A program made the position numbers and the translations under genes. A DNA stretch of 64,000 nt from Phallusia mammillata (Eukaryota), in contig OZ281497.1 in NCBI GenBank assembly GCA_965637545.1, positions 6,014,001 to 6,078,000 of the forward strand. The letters are read 5' to 3'. Numbering within the stretch: the first letter of the stretch is position 1; every line of letters starts with the position of its first letter. A model generated the notes under the pieces. That model saw nothing but the letters and a program-made list of their open reading frames with translations, was not told where the DNA came from and ran no database searches. Shown piece by piece: positions 175-6,200 of the stretch.

Positions 175-2475
175 TGTTGGAAGGAGAACATAAAAACCTC
201 GGTGAGCGTCGAGATTTTTTTTTGAATATATTATTTGATATGTTGGGTTTGCATACGACATTAATATCATTAAACCTAAAAACTGGGAAAAAAATTGGAT
301 GAATTGCATAATGTAACAATATTTTTTGTTACATTTTGTTGGTTGTAAACTTCTGCTTGCCATAAAATGCCGCAGCCGTGTTTATTTTAAACGCAGCCAT
401 AGATACAGTGGTTGTACATGGGTCAAATTTGTAAACAGTGTCTGAATCTGGTAACGTTGTTGTAGTTTGTAGATTTGTAGTTTGTAGAAAAATATATTCC
501 GTTTCTTTCCAACTGTTTGTTTCACTCCAGAATCCCAACAAGTTAATCCTTTTGTTGCTGTTTTTTCAATTGTTAATCAATTGCTTAGTGTTTTTCCGTA
601 TTATTGTGGGCAAGCTTTGCGGAAGTTAACAGGTGGAATATTTGTTGTCATAGTGAATAATAAACCTAATATCGAAAAAATATTGTATGTTTGTTGAAAC
701 TACATATAAGTTAGTTTGGTTTTGGACTTGCTTTTTAGAATGTGGGGAGCAACATTTTACTTCTTCGTCTGGCAATCTTACGTCACCCGGTTACCCTGGA
801 GATTATCGCAACAACTTGGATTGTGAATACACCATCACTATATCTTCTGGGATGGTAAGTGACAGTAAACCTGATTTACAAAAATGGTGTCCCAAGTACC
901 CTAAAGACTAAAAAGTTGTATGCCAACATAAAATATTTCACTTTGCGTTCACTACAGCATGTTTGGTATATTCATGTAACACATTTTCTGTTTTTTCTGT
1001 AAATGAATTGTAACGACCTTTTCAAAAATTTGATGCACGTTATAACATGTATTGAGTCACATCGACATTTTTTTACTTTGGGTTTTCCAATTTGCTGTGA
1101 TTATCGTAACTGCTCTAAACAGTTTTGTGGTACTAAAAAGACTTTTAGCAGCCTATAGTAGACATATGCTTTAGATTTTTGTACGCTTATATATCTATAA
1201 TAAACCAATTTCTTGACATCAGTAATTTTAAAACAAAAAGGAAGGTATATGGCGGCCGTTGATGAAATAAAAAACTGCTATGCACCCGTTGTAGCAAAAA
1301 GATTGTGCACCCCTGCACTAGATAGTACATATCTATCATGATTTTTATTTACTAAAATCTATGTTCTGCCAAAGCAAACTTACTATGGTTCTACGAAAAT
1401 GATACATTTAAGGTACTAGTGTAAAGTCCCACCAAACTGTTAAGAGGTTAGGGCCAATTTGGCATGGGGAGTTATATAGTTTATTATTTAACAACCATCA
1501 GACATAGGTAACTTCCAAGATTCGTTTTTATTGTATGATTTTTATTTCAATCTTTGCCTTATTTTTAATTTTATGTTTTCATCAACTTTCTAAAAATTGG
1601 TTAATATTTTTTTTACTTTGTCAGGCGATATTGATTGAATTCCTAGATTTTGACGTGGAATTTGCCTCAAACTGTATTTATGACTACTTGGAAGTTTACG
1701 ATGGAATACAATTGGTAAGTGTTTTGTTTTATTAAAAACACATTTGATTAGTTGACAAACATTTCAATAAAAAGTAAAAAGTATTACAACATTTGTGTTT
1801 ATCTTCCATTTATTTGGATCTCTGAGTTTCCGCAGGAAGACTACAGAAAAATTTACAACCCTACCTTTAGTGCGACTGCGATCTATAATCTACTAACCAC
1901 GGTAATTTTGTTAGATATCTGGAAGACTGTGTGGCAATAATCTCCCACCCAACTTTATTGCCTACTCCACAATATTACGCCTTGTGTTTCATACCGATTA
2001 TATCGTAACGTCAACTGGATTTTTTATCTCTTGGACAACATCAAGTGAGTAGTTTTAGCATTTTCTTAACTTACTTGATTTTTATCTATAGTTTGGATGA
2101 CCAGCTCATTGTCTTTTCTTGACTTAAGAAGCGTCTATACCTTTAGATTCCTCTATAATTTACAAGTCTTCAGAGTTTTTAGACGTTGATGGTGCCCGAT
2201 CCTTTGCAAAATATTTGTAGGACCTTTTAACTTTTATCGGAATATTGGCTTGAAATCCGTTTTAGGCAAATATCGTTTGTTTACCACCTTGACAAATGTA
2301 GTGATTAGTGTATGTAAAAGGGCCACGGAAGGCAACCATATTTAGTTGCTTTCGTGGATTATGTTTTTTTTTAAGTGTGGGTATATTAATTTTACATTTT
2401 GTTTAGATTTAACCATGCCAAACACCACCACCAGCGTTCCAACTCCGCCTACTACCGTCAATATTACTGTGCCAG
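175..2475 (+). CDS. 3' portion of an upstream paralog: 27-nt linker microexon, CUB domain and Pro/Thr linker; truncated at about 2970
   Basis: In-phase GT-AG exons 175-201 (VLEGEHKNL), 739-854 ([33 protein letters not shown]), 1625-1714 ([27 protein letters not shown]), 1915-2044 ([12 protein letters not shown]...FHTD...GFFISW) and 2407-2475 ([16 protein letters not shown]). The region is paralogous to about 12170-15290. Confidence 0.85.
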
Positions 2476-2524
2476 GTATATATATATATATATAAAGCAG
2501 AAAAAGTTGCATGAATACATACAC

Positions 2525-2575
2525 CAGGGGTCGGCAACCTTTTCTACAACGGGGGCCGAAAATAATATCAGCAAA
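2525..2575 (+). mobile_element. 5' end fragment of a hAT-type MITE
   Basis: Begins CAGGGGTCGGCAACC, a hAT-like terminus. A degenerate paralogous copy lies at about 14642. No matching 3' end was found. Confidence 0.45.
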
Positions 2576-2996
2576 TTGCGACGGACTGGATTAATTTTCA
2601 CTATTAATTCTGGTTATATCATTTTTCATTTGTTGTGTAACTACAAATTTAAACCAAACTTCAAGCAGTAAAACTGCATTAATGACAATCTTTTCAAAAC
2701 CGGTATGGCAACACTTGAAACATTGCTGAAATGACGATATTTGCGTTCACACGTGTGTAAAGTTGTCTGTAAGATAAAAGCTGGCGATTATAACAGAGCA
2801 AAAATAGTATTATTCCACACAAGTACAGAGATAAAGCGAAGAAAAAAAGCGTTGTTTTCACCTACAATTGTTTTTGTTAGTAGAAACTTATCTGAGAAGC
2901 CCAGATCGCTGTTGGTTCACGCGTTCGGTTTAGTCCGAATCAGGAGCTGCATGCTATTTGTCGTCATAGTATAGTCATGAGGAGCAAACCGTAAAA

Positions 2997-3105: not shown

Positions 3106-3185
3106 ACAACTGATATTGTGGCTCATTGCAGTGCAGTGTCTGCAGTTCAAAGCAGTCAGTACTGCAAACTAATTTTTATGCAACG

Positions 3186-3278
3186 ATGTTGAATTTGTGA
3201 TGTGTTTGACTTGTTGTCTTGGAATAACACAAGCACAAACAGATTTGGTTAATACAACACATAACCTACTAAATACCC
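3186..3278 (+). CDS. Signal-peptide first exon of gene A, with an apparent 1-nt frameshift after the homologous ATG
   Basis: Homologous to 35136-35199 ([18 protein letters not shown]). The ATG at 3186 reads MLNL*. The in-frame ATG at 3200 gives [26 protein letters not shown] with a phase-1 donor at 3279 (gtaag). Confidence 0.65.
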
Positions 3279-6200
3279 GTAAGTGAACTAAAAACTAGTT
3301 GCTTTGAACTTTATATAGGCGACTGTGCCTTGCGATATTAACGAGAAATATCTCATACTAAATTAAGTAACAATTGGTGGTAATAATGACAATGCACATA
3401 CAGTTATGGTTGCAAGTGTACATGTTAAATTTGAGGATAATTGCAGGTACAAAATGCTTGTTTTGGAAACAAGTCTTATATTTTGCAATGATAGTGATTA
3501 GAGAAAGCAAGTTTCAATAACATTTATTGAAAATTTGAGCCAAATAGTTAGTGTTGTCAAACGAACTGCATTTGTAATCGTTATATTGCTTCTGCAACAT
3601 CCAATTCCGTCATATTTTGACATGATTGGATATCTATCGTTTAATCATTAAATATGTTTAGTGTGATAAGGAATTTAAGTGCTCTGGCAACATACGATAA
3701 TATCGACAAGTCTTTTATTCAAAAAAGATTGGTGTTTGTTTTACTTGTTGGCAAGTCCGCAAGATTTTTTGTGAATTTTTGTTCACCAACTTCAACAAAT
3801 GGTAAACATACGATAATATTCGACAAGTCTTACTGTCGAATATTCAGTTGCGTCCCGAAACCGTTTCGTTTTTCCGAAACCCCCTTTTTCCCTTCGTGCT
3901 GGCTTAAAGCTTTGGGGTTTACCAAGTTAAATGTGTCAGGACAGTTACGCATCGTTTAACTTTGAGCTGCGCGTTTTTGCTGCATTTGCGTCTGGTCTAG
4001 AAAAGATGCACGTGTACGGACTGCAATAGAGCGTGAACTTACTGTGATACATTTGATACAGCGCTACCAAGTTTCTGGCTTGAAAATTCCTGTCAGTTAC
4101 TTTAGTTGTTTACTTTCTACACTTGCACGCCAGACAACTGAAAGATATATTTGATGGTTTGAGTCGCTAAATCTATTGTAAACAACTTATGAATTTTGAA
4201 CAGACTGAAATTCAAGCAGGTAAAAAGTTGTGAATCAGTAAATACAAAATCTATGGATCCAAAAAAGATAGCAAGTGCCAAACTAAAACGACGTAATACA
4301 TAAAATCAGCACTCCAACATTTTCTATTGGAAGACCATTACATACATTAAATAATAATTATCTCTGTTTTTTGTTTCTGATAAAGATTATATTGCCAAGA
4401 CATGGCAAATCTTCATATTACTCAGGCAGAACAATAGGTGCAAACGAGAGGAAATTCTCCTTGTTGTTTGTCTTTATTTGCGCTTAACCTTAGGTGTTTT
4501 CGTAGCGTTGTGACATGCTTTCGTTTCATTCTTTTTACCTTTGTTTATTGTGCACTGTTCGAGTCGCATTCAGTGTTATTTGCCCTGATGAAGACGACCT
4601 GTATAGAACGTCGAAACGTCGGACTAAAAATGCATGTGAGACAAGAGCACTATAAACTTGATTGTTTTCGATTGTTTTTCAGAAAACTATTGCGTTGAAC
4701 CATTTCTTCAAAACTCCACCACTGGTTTCATTACATCCCCATTGTACCCGCAGACTTATCCTCGTGGTCTTAATTGTGAATGGAGAATTGAAGTTCCCAG
4801 CGATAAGGTTTAGTGTTTGATTGTCGTTGTTACTTTATTGCATTGTGTTTCGAAGATTGGTTGTTGCATTTACTAAAATCCCGTTTTTGTTGTAAAGCTG
4901 TCAAAAAGATTTTAGATTGATCTGTTTTGAAATTTGTAACAGCTGATAATATGAGCTAGTGAAACTAGAAGAAAACTTTTTAAACTACCTATAAGACAAC
5001 GTAAGCGAATTACTATAATGTTAAGATAACGTGGCTCACACAAAACAATATTTGCTATGACAATAACTCATGGTGCTGTTTGTTGTCTCTCAGGTCATTC
5101 ACGTTACCTTCAGTGATCTTGATATTTACGAATCGAGCGTTTGCTCTCAGGACTACTTACAAGTCCTGGATGGTGTAGAAATGGTATTTTCTTTATTAAG
5201 CTGATCTAAACTGTAATACTATAAATACAGTAAACCTCTGGGCCCTTCTATTTTGTCCGAATTAGGCAAAGATCTGGATTAACCGATCCCCTTTAACCGC
5301 GGTTTACTGTACTTAATATACAACGCTAGTCTGATGGTTGCTTTGTTAAACTTGCCATCAAGACAGTGTGTAATTCGAATTAATAATTTTCTGTTAATAC
5401 TTGCTCAGCGACGTTTGTTTTTCGCAGTACACTGGCAGAAAGTTCTGTGGAACAACAAGCCCTAAAAACTTCACAGCTTTCAACAATACAGTCACCGTTC
5501 ACTTTGTATCGACCACATACACCATTTACAGCGAGTATCGTGGTTTTAACATCTCCTGGCATACAACGGGTAAGAGCTAACGTACTTTTAATGTAAAACT
5601 TGCAGTAACGTTGACATAGTAAAGTTTGTAATATTGGTAATATTACTGTTTTCGAGAAGACAAATCTTTTTTTAAAGAAAAATTTAACAAGAAGTTTTGC
5701 TCTACTGCCTGTTAGGCAAATTGTTTACATGTAAATGTGTTGGTATCGTAACCAAGTTGGCAGTGATCTTTGGTTTTTTAGACCGCTGTAGCCTGGATGA
5801 GTACACTTGCTGGAACGGTACTTGCATTCCTGAAACAAAACACTGCGACTTGGTGAACGATTGTACGGACAACAGTGACGAAATTGAATGCGGTAAGCAT
5901 TTCAACGAATCACTCCGTTCTCTGACCGTCAAACGCGGGTGATATAACGTATAATAATATAGTAGAGGTTGCTTAGTTTCTTTCTGTTACAGCAAAGCTG
6001 TACAATAGTTTACAAACTGTAGCGTACTTGCAATATTATACATTCGCTTAACTTATTGGTTCTTGCAGCAAGAAGTTGCTACAAATTTGTCTGTACACAG
6101 TGTCGGTCTTTTACTCCAACCTATGAAATTGTTACCATAAGACATGTTTGCTTGTTTATTTTCAGCGCACGCCTCGACGAACTTGTCTGAATGCGGAAAA

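Follow-up and report, generated by a model that had tools for sequence, protein, structure and literature searches.

The 64,000-nucleotide (nt) stretch of Phallusia mammillata DNA analysed here (contig OZ281497.1 of assembly GCA_965637545.1, positions 6,014,001 to 6,078,000 of the forward strand; "the window") is AT-rich DNA with short exons, in which a truncated gene copy abuts a gene with several protease domains, gene A. We found that the seam between the two, at positions 2970-2973, is a real tandem-duplication breakpoint: the intron that follows a linker exon has been joined to a point 213 nt upstream of a start codon. In our best reading, to which we give a probability of about 0.6, the seam has a single origin and was multiplied by unequal crossing-over, and four successive units (U0, U1 and U2, which are truncated, and U3, the front of gene A) would be read through in frame to give a chain of about 5,500 amino acids (aa). 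Negative window coordinates denote sequence upstream of the window, and the features of the window are collected in Table 1.

A duplication seam that is present three times

When the window was compared with itself using BLAST, positions 1-2964 proved collinear with 12176-15290 at 77-96% identity, the matched blocks being, in order, 1-594, 713-858, 956-1108, 1316-2308, 2306-2576, 2557-2899 and 2912-2964. On the parental side the homology stops at 15290, 60 nt short of the CUB acceptor at 15350/15351. The following segment, 2973-3614, matches 34918-35530 with 73% identity; this is where gene B, the next paralogue, has its promoter and first exon. We also searched the 240-Mb assembly with a probe of 181 nt across the junction. 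There are exactly three full-length matches, all within the array described below. The left half of the probe matches linker introns (15238-15290 and three sites in the first unit, U0), but no further than window position 2970, and the right half matches the promoters of U0 and gene B, but not before 2973. Each flank corresponds to a different collinear parental site and the switch between them is sharp, as in the junction of a tandem segmental duplication. The original prediction, made from the letters of the window, had put the parallel at about 12170-15290, the end of homology about 60 nt before the next CUB acceptor and the switch to promoter and exon-1 homology with 34918 onward at 2973, and all three statements are borne out.

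Annotation of the sequence upstream of the window had also been called for in the original prediction. We read 70 kb of it, and the upstream copy turned out to be the third of three truncated units. The seam-bearing block recurs at -15.2 kb (99% identity) and at -30.2 kb (94-97%), so that seams are present three times with a spacing of about 15.2 kb. According to motif scans, Pfam searches on single exons and tblastn cores, a unit consists of a first exon, CUB, LDLa, an active protease, CUB, LDLa, an inactive protease, a 27-nt microexon, CUB and a Thr/Pro linker. Four such units lie head to tail: U0, whose first exon starts at -48280 (the unit itself at about -48.5 kb), U1 and U2, which lie between seams, and U3. 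The 3' end of U0 (-38002..-28199) holds four tandem CUB and linker cassettes with a period of 2.62 kb, which are 99.5-100% alike and all in frame.

What can be said about the history of the array? The flanks of the first seam (J1) are 94.5% identical to those of the other two (J2 and J3), which are 99.6% identical to each other, and J1 and J2/J3 share indels that separate them from the parental intron types. Because of this 5.5% difference and the shared indels, we conclude that the seam has a single origin, which is not of very recent date. The units themselves are mosaics. In their fronts, U1, U2 and U3 resemble one another and U0 stands apart, while in the 3' parts U1 groups with U2 and U0 with U3 (94-99% in exons); the divergence between these two 3' groups is 7% in exons and 16% in introns. 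Such mosaics are explained by unequal crossing-over between units. An extra 2.9 kb in U1 and U2 was considered as a recombination junction and rejected, as it is a dispersed transposon. This element has terminal repeats of about 230 bp and sits in the intron between exons 2 and 3 of the middle CUB in U1 and U2 only; the copies in U2 (L015:4213-7096) and U1 (G000:C4:5992887-5995919) are about 100% identical, and others are found on contigs 3 and 6.

Reading frame, domains and selection

Direct reading of the exons on both sides of the window seam agrees with the original prediction, in which the linker exon ended and the first CUB exon of U3 began in phase 1. The 69-nt linker exon is in phase 1 at both ends and carries a G, the CUB exon requires one carried base (G+AA = Glu), and the joined reading from 2475 to 4683 contains no stop. 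At 2476 the donor has the same sequence as its parental counterpart at 14601 (linker exon 14532-14600), which must function in gene A. The acceptor at 4682 is strong, with a long pyrimidine tract, and would serve both the relic exon 1 of gene A and the upstream linker exon. A script scan found no AATAAA or ATTAAA between the linker donor and the seam, and retention of the intron after 2475 leads to a stop after 6 codons. A transcript from an upstream promoter therefore has no evident end point and one obvious acceptor. The intron that we propose across the seam would hold the remnant of the left-flank intron, the relic promoter, the relic first exon and the old intron 1. A dispersed repeat also lies in this intron, 20 nt upstream of the acceptor; its copies are found on all large contigs, and it is absent at the equivalent place of U0.

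We curated the 24 non-first exons of U3 by eye and lifted them to U0-U2 by alignment, with one U0 donor placed manually; frames were joined in scripts, and Pfam and homology searches were run on single exons. None of the 24 exons is missing from any unit, their lengths are equal or differ by 3 nt, and AG acceptors and GT donors are kept throughout. The translations are open without a stop over 1396 aa in U0 (from an intact ATG), 957 in U1, 957 in U2 and 958 in U3, and each of the four chains ends in phase 1 carrying a G. That all three seams are in frame is as expected when all module borders are phase 1. In total, the splice model keeps its frame for 4,268 aa (U0-U3) plus a tail of 545 aa. 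We did not include in it a possible further microexon of 24 nt (8661-8684), which would lie between protease 1 and the CUB that follows and has phase 1-1, a strong acceptor and the donor GTGAGT; the frame is the same with or without it. Further downstream, with the boundaries used here, the last exon of the second protease of the gene A continuation ends in phase 2 and the next CUB exon needs phase 1 (21489-22025).

The Trypsin profile PF00089 matches exons 6834-6995, 7663-7926, 8331-8495 and 10196-10576 of U3 (E-values from 8e-17 to 8e-7), LDLa is found in every unit (PF00057), and a Pfam CUB match on 657-908 supports the last CUB of U2. In every unit, protease 1 carries the catalytic His, Asp and Ser (TAAHC, DIALL and GDSGGP) together with an activation site DPR-IVGG, as an S1 protease should. 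In the second protease domain of each unit we find TSASC and GDEGGP, i.e. the His and the Ser are lost, which makes this domain a protease homologue and not an enzyme.

We wanted to know whether the truncated units bear signs of selection, and therefore compared indels and substitutions between units. Between U1 and U2, there are no indels in 2,871 nt of exons, 20 in 11,921 nt of introns and 2 in 92 nt of the first exon; between the 3' part of U1/U2 and U3, there is one indel of 3 nt in 1,426 nt of exons, compared with 79 in 3,967 nt of introns. The ratio of nonsynonymous to synonymous differences per site (pN/pS) is 0.33 for U1 against U2 (P = 0.0017), 0.18 for the fronts of U2 and U3, 0.19 for the 3' parts of U0 and U2, and 0.23 for the 3' parts of U2 and U3. 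For lineages confined to the truncated units, the ratio is 0.1-0.3. Polarised with gene B as the outgroup, 20 synonymous and 6 nonsynonymous changes fall on the lineage found only in the truncated U1/U2, 11 and 8 on the U0 tip, and 9 and 10 on the tip of U3, gene A's own unit. These counts indicate that the truncated units are under purifying selection and are constrained at least as much as gene A.

Table 1. Features around the seam and in gene A, in window coordinates
Feature	Position	Strand	Details
27-nt microexon of U2, after the inactive protease	175..201	+	phase 1 to 1; lifted from 12342-12368, AG/GT kept
Last CUB of U2	739..2044	+	three exons: 739-854, 1625-1714, 1915-2044; phases 1>0, 0>0, 0>1
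Thr/Pro-rich linker exon, last exon of truncated unit U2	2407..2475	+	phase 1 end; donor CAG/GTATAT, read from the sequence
Proposed intron across the seam	2476..4682	+	2,207 nt; predicted from phases and splice sites
Duplication breakpoint	2970..2973		linker-intron homology ends at 2970, promoter homology begins at 2973
Relic promoter and 5' leader of U3 (gene A)	2973..3185	+	213 nt of ancestral upstream sequence; 88% identical to U0, 82% to gene B
Stranded first (signal-peptide) exon of gene A	3186..3278	+	1-bp deletion in codon 3; donor GTAAGT intact
Dispersed repeat in intron	4492..4662		170 bp; dozens of copies of about 89% genome-wide
First CUB exon of U3	4683..4807	+	phase 1 in; Pfam CUB
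Rest of U3, 23 exons	5094..14600	+	exon-by-exon curation, 958 aa open, Pfam on single exons; after the first CUB exon: CUB, LDLa, active protease 6834-8472, CUB, LDLa, inactive protease 10034-11857, microexon, CUB, linker 14532-14600
Parental counterpart of the left breakpoint	15238..15296	+	intron, 60 nt upstream of CUB acceptor 15350
Gene A continuation, 14 exons	15351..21489	+	545 aa in frame; CUB, linker, CUB, LDLa, second active protease

Stranded first exons and competing explanations

The first exons of the internal units are decaying. Those of U2 and U3 share a 1-bp deletion in codon 3, after which the first ATG stops after 4 codons, and that of U1 has a different 1-bp deletion near its 3' end, which leads to a TAA ahead of the donor. 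On the other hand, the first exon of U0 is intact (a 17-residue signal-type start, phase 1 at the donor), as are those of gene C and, by eye in the alignment, gene B. Thus, two independent deletions are seen in three internal first exons and none in the three leading copies. Two frameshifts in a 93-nt first exon compare with none in the 2,871 nt of the other exons; if two events were placed at random among exon bases, the chance that both land in the first exon would be about 0.001. We also tried relic exon 1 as an in-frame internal exon and rejected it, as its frame is open from 3173 onward only and 3173-3200 contains no AG. Because there is neither an acceptor nor an open frame upstream of 3173, relic exon 1 would be skipped.

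According to our best reading, after the single origin of the seam unequal crossing-over would have spread it to three copies, giving the four head-to-tail units. The gene thus seems to have been lengthened by copying its front 12-15 kb in tandem several times over. Transcription from the U0 promoter would run through the whole array, each linker donor (2475 in the window) would be joined to the acceptor of the first CUB in the following unit (4683 in the window), and the first exons of the internal units, being without an acceptor, would be left out. The product would be one secreted or anchored chain in which each protease has its own Arg-Ile-Val-Gly-Gly activation site; it would comprise ten S1 domains (6 of catalytic type and 4 inactive), about 18 CUB and about 10 LDLa. 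We see roughly even odds that the array from about -48.3 kb to beyond +26 kb is a single gene of about 75 kb with more than 100 exons, coding for some 5,500 aa and built stepwise by promoter-carrying duplications, with its internal starts being lost. Everything that the read-through in the original prediction implied at the sequence level was found, namely the phases, the donor, the acceptor, the lack of a poly(A) hexamer, open and selected upstream exons, and broken stranded first exons; what it had missed is that there are three seams instead of one, and that the product would be larger than supposed.

There are, however, several points that weigh against this reading, and some of them lead to other explanations. 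Potentially, the units could be separate transcription units, each with its own promoter, the truncated ones ending in the post-linker intron (as shorter secreted proteins or as nothing) and gene A starting from ATG 3200. The relic promoter keeps a block with a TGACGTA motif that is conserved in an alignment of units 0, 1, 3 and gene B, and the internal promoters may therefore still be in use. Relic exon 1 of gene A keeps its donor (the exon-1 donor is GTAAGT in all units) and ATG 3200, the ancestral Met6, which in the U2/U3 type is still in frame, with phase 1 at the donor; gene A could thus start by itself, and U0 with its intact signal exon could stand alone. Moreover, both exon-1 deletions are younger than the seam and the split of U1 and U2, i.e. 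the internal first exons stayed open for a while. Nevertheless, we consider separate units unlikely. The leader has two AUGs ahead of ATG 3200, and initiation at this third one leaves a hydrophobic start of 12 residues, to which U3 adds an Ala-to-Thr change. The first exon of U1 hits a TAA before the donor, yet the other 24 exons of this unit are intact; no poly(A) hexamer precedes the seam; and the lowest ratio of nonsynonymous to synonymous changes is found on the very lineage that exists only in truncated units.

The intactness of U1, U2 and the front of U3, which are 97-100% alike, is owed partly to youth and gene conversion, and one may ask whether these two could account for all of it, the truncated units being young, non-functional duplicates that are kept intact by recency and by conversion from a working unit. 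U1 and U2 indeed differ by about 1%, in exons and introns alike, their 3' parts differ at only 7 coding sites, and the transposon is practically the same in both. But the divergence between J1 and J2 tells that the arrangement is not brand new, and a close working donor is lacking for the 3' part of U1/U2, given its distance from U3; nonetheless, this part shows the 20 to 6 excess of synonymous changes and no frameshift. As the U0 tip is constrained too and decay is confined to first exons, we find it improbable that the copies were dead on arrival. We give slightly less credit still to the possibility that the seam or the number of units is an artefact of the assembly, made from near-identical repeats or from two haplotypes placed in tandem. 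The 99-100% identity between blocks of U1, U2 and U3 is within what heterozygosity can amount to in sea squirts, and for this reason there may be fewer units than were counted. In addition, an inverted copy of 4.5 kb (99.6%) of part of U0, at -53973..-49496, abuts a run of 200 Ns (-49495..-49296) 1 kb upstream of the U0 promoter; it is probably a misplaced haplotig or a fold-back artefact, and there is at least one doubtful assembly join here. However, there are at least two diverged forms of the seam (J1 and J2/J3) with different left neighbours, no N occurs within 50 kb of the window seam, and even if U1 and U2 were merged, a seam ahead of gene A would be left.

Gene B shows some further features. 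It has two different intact first-exon-like segments about 500 nt apart (34624-34699 and about 35130-35193), one type of which is also present at gene C (60348-60423); these may be alternative first exons or another relic. An LDLa-protease-CUB block of gene B occurs twice in tandem (38203-43028 and 43244-46960), as a separate internal duplication.

Known polyproteases and the growth of mosaic genes

Chains with several proteases are known. In polyserases, one chain contains two or three S1 domains, and some of these are catalytically dead (PMC1435904). The human polyserases (polyserase-1/TMPRSS9, polyserase-2 and polyserase-3; PMC1435904) resemble the predicted product of the array in this respect, and polyserase-1 shares an LDLa module with it, but they have no CUB and only 2-3 protease domains, whereas the array has CUB modules and more proteases. 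Furthermore, polyserase-1 is membrane bound, a type II protein with an N-terminal anchor, while the chain described here starts with the signal-type exon of U0, in which, by eye, the 17 hydrophobic residues are followed by polar ones without a cytoplasmic segment. HrOvochymase, an ascidian polyprotease from Halocynthia roretzi, has a signal peptide, and its trypsin-like domains alternate with CUBs; the last of its proteases lacks the catalytic triad (PMC9265791). It and the vertebrate ovochymases share with the array the alternation of protease and CUB and the dead protease (PMC9265791). Ovochymase, however, has three proteases, five CUBs and no LDLa, whereas in the array four copies of the unit CUB-LDLa-protease-CUB-LDLa-dead protease-CUB, with LDLa in each, precede another two CUB-LDLa-protease modules. 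The array therefore does not qualify as an ovochymase. In size and in its many tandem S1 domains, the predicted chain is similar to giant predicted fish polyserases (Lepisosteus oculatus XP_069044036.1 with 4,066 aa and 14 trypsin domains, and a low-quality wrasse model of 5,350 aa). These are gene models too; they consist of protease domains only, without CUB or LDLa, and their identity is at most 60% even in the most conserved exon. The protein library contained no close relative or annotated model, the best match to the inactive-protease exon being a gar protein with about 30% identity, and tblastn gave no match above 61%. The CUB-LDLa unit of the array is present neither in the polyserases nor in HrOvochymase or the fish models.

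Gene elongation by partial tandem duplication of phase 1-1 modules, as well as read-through (conjoined) genes, are known processes, and the array, as we read it, is a clean example of them rather than a new kind of system: the breakpoints are intronic, the joins are in frame, and an upstream copy without a terminator would run into the next. It differs from the usual phase 1-1 elongation in that the duplicated block included the promoter and the signal-peptide exon. This is its less common feature: both were copied along and now, decaying, appear to lie inside introns.

Automatic annotation will probably break this array up into three or four genes, or treat its upstream units as pseudogenes. 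If the read-through is true, the growth of a mosaic extracellular protease can be seen here in one place: tandem phase-1 modules, together with a promoter and a first exon, would have been absorbed into one longer gene, with the start exons decaying and the rest kept by selection. The locus would then be a natural series of stages of gene elongation and its product among the largest polyproteases proposed, and, with tethered zymogens and dead protease domains side by side, it would offer a test case for protease cascades on a single polypeptide.

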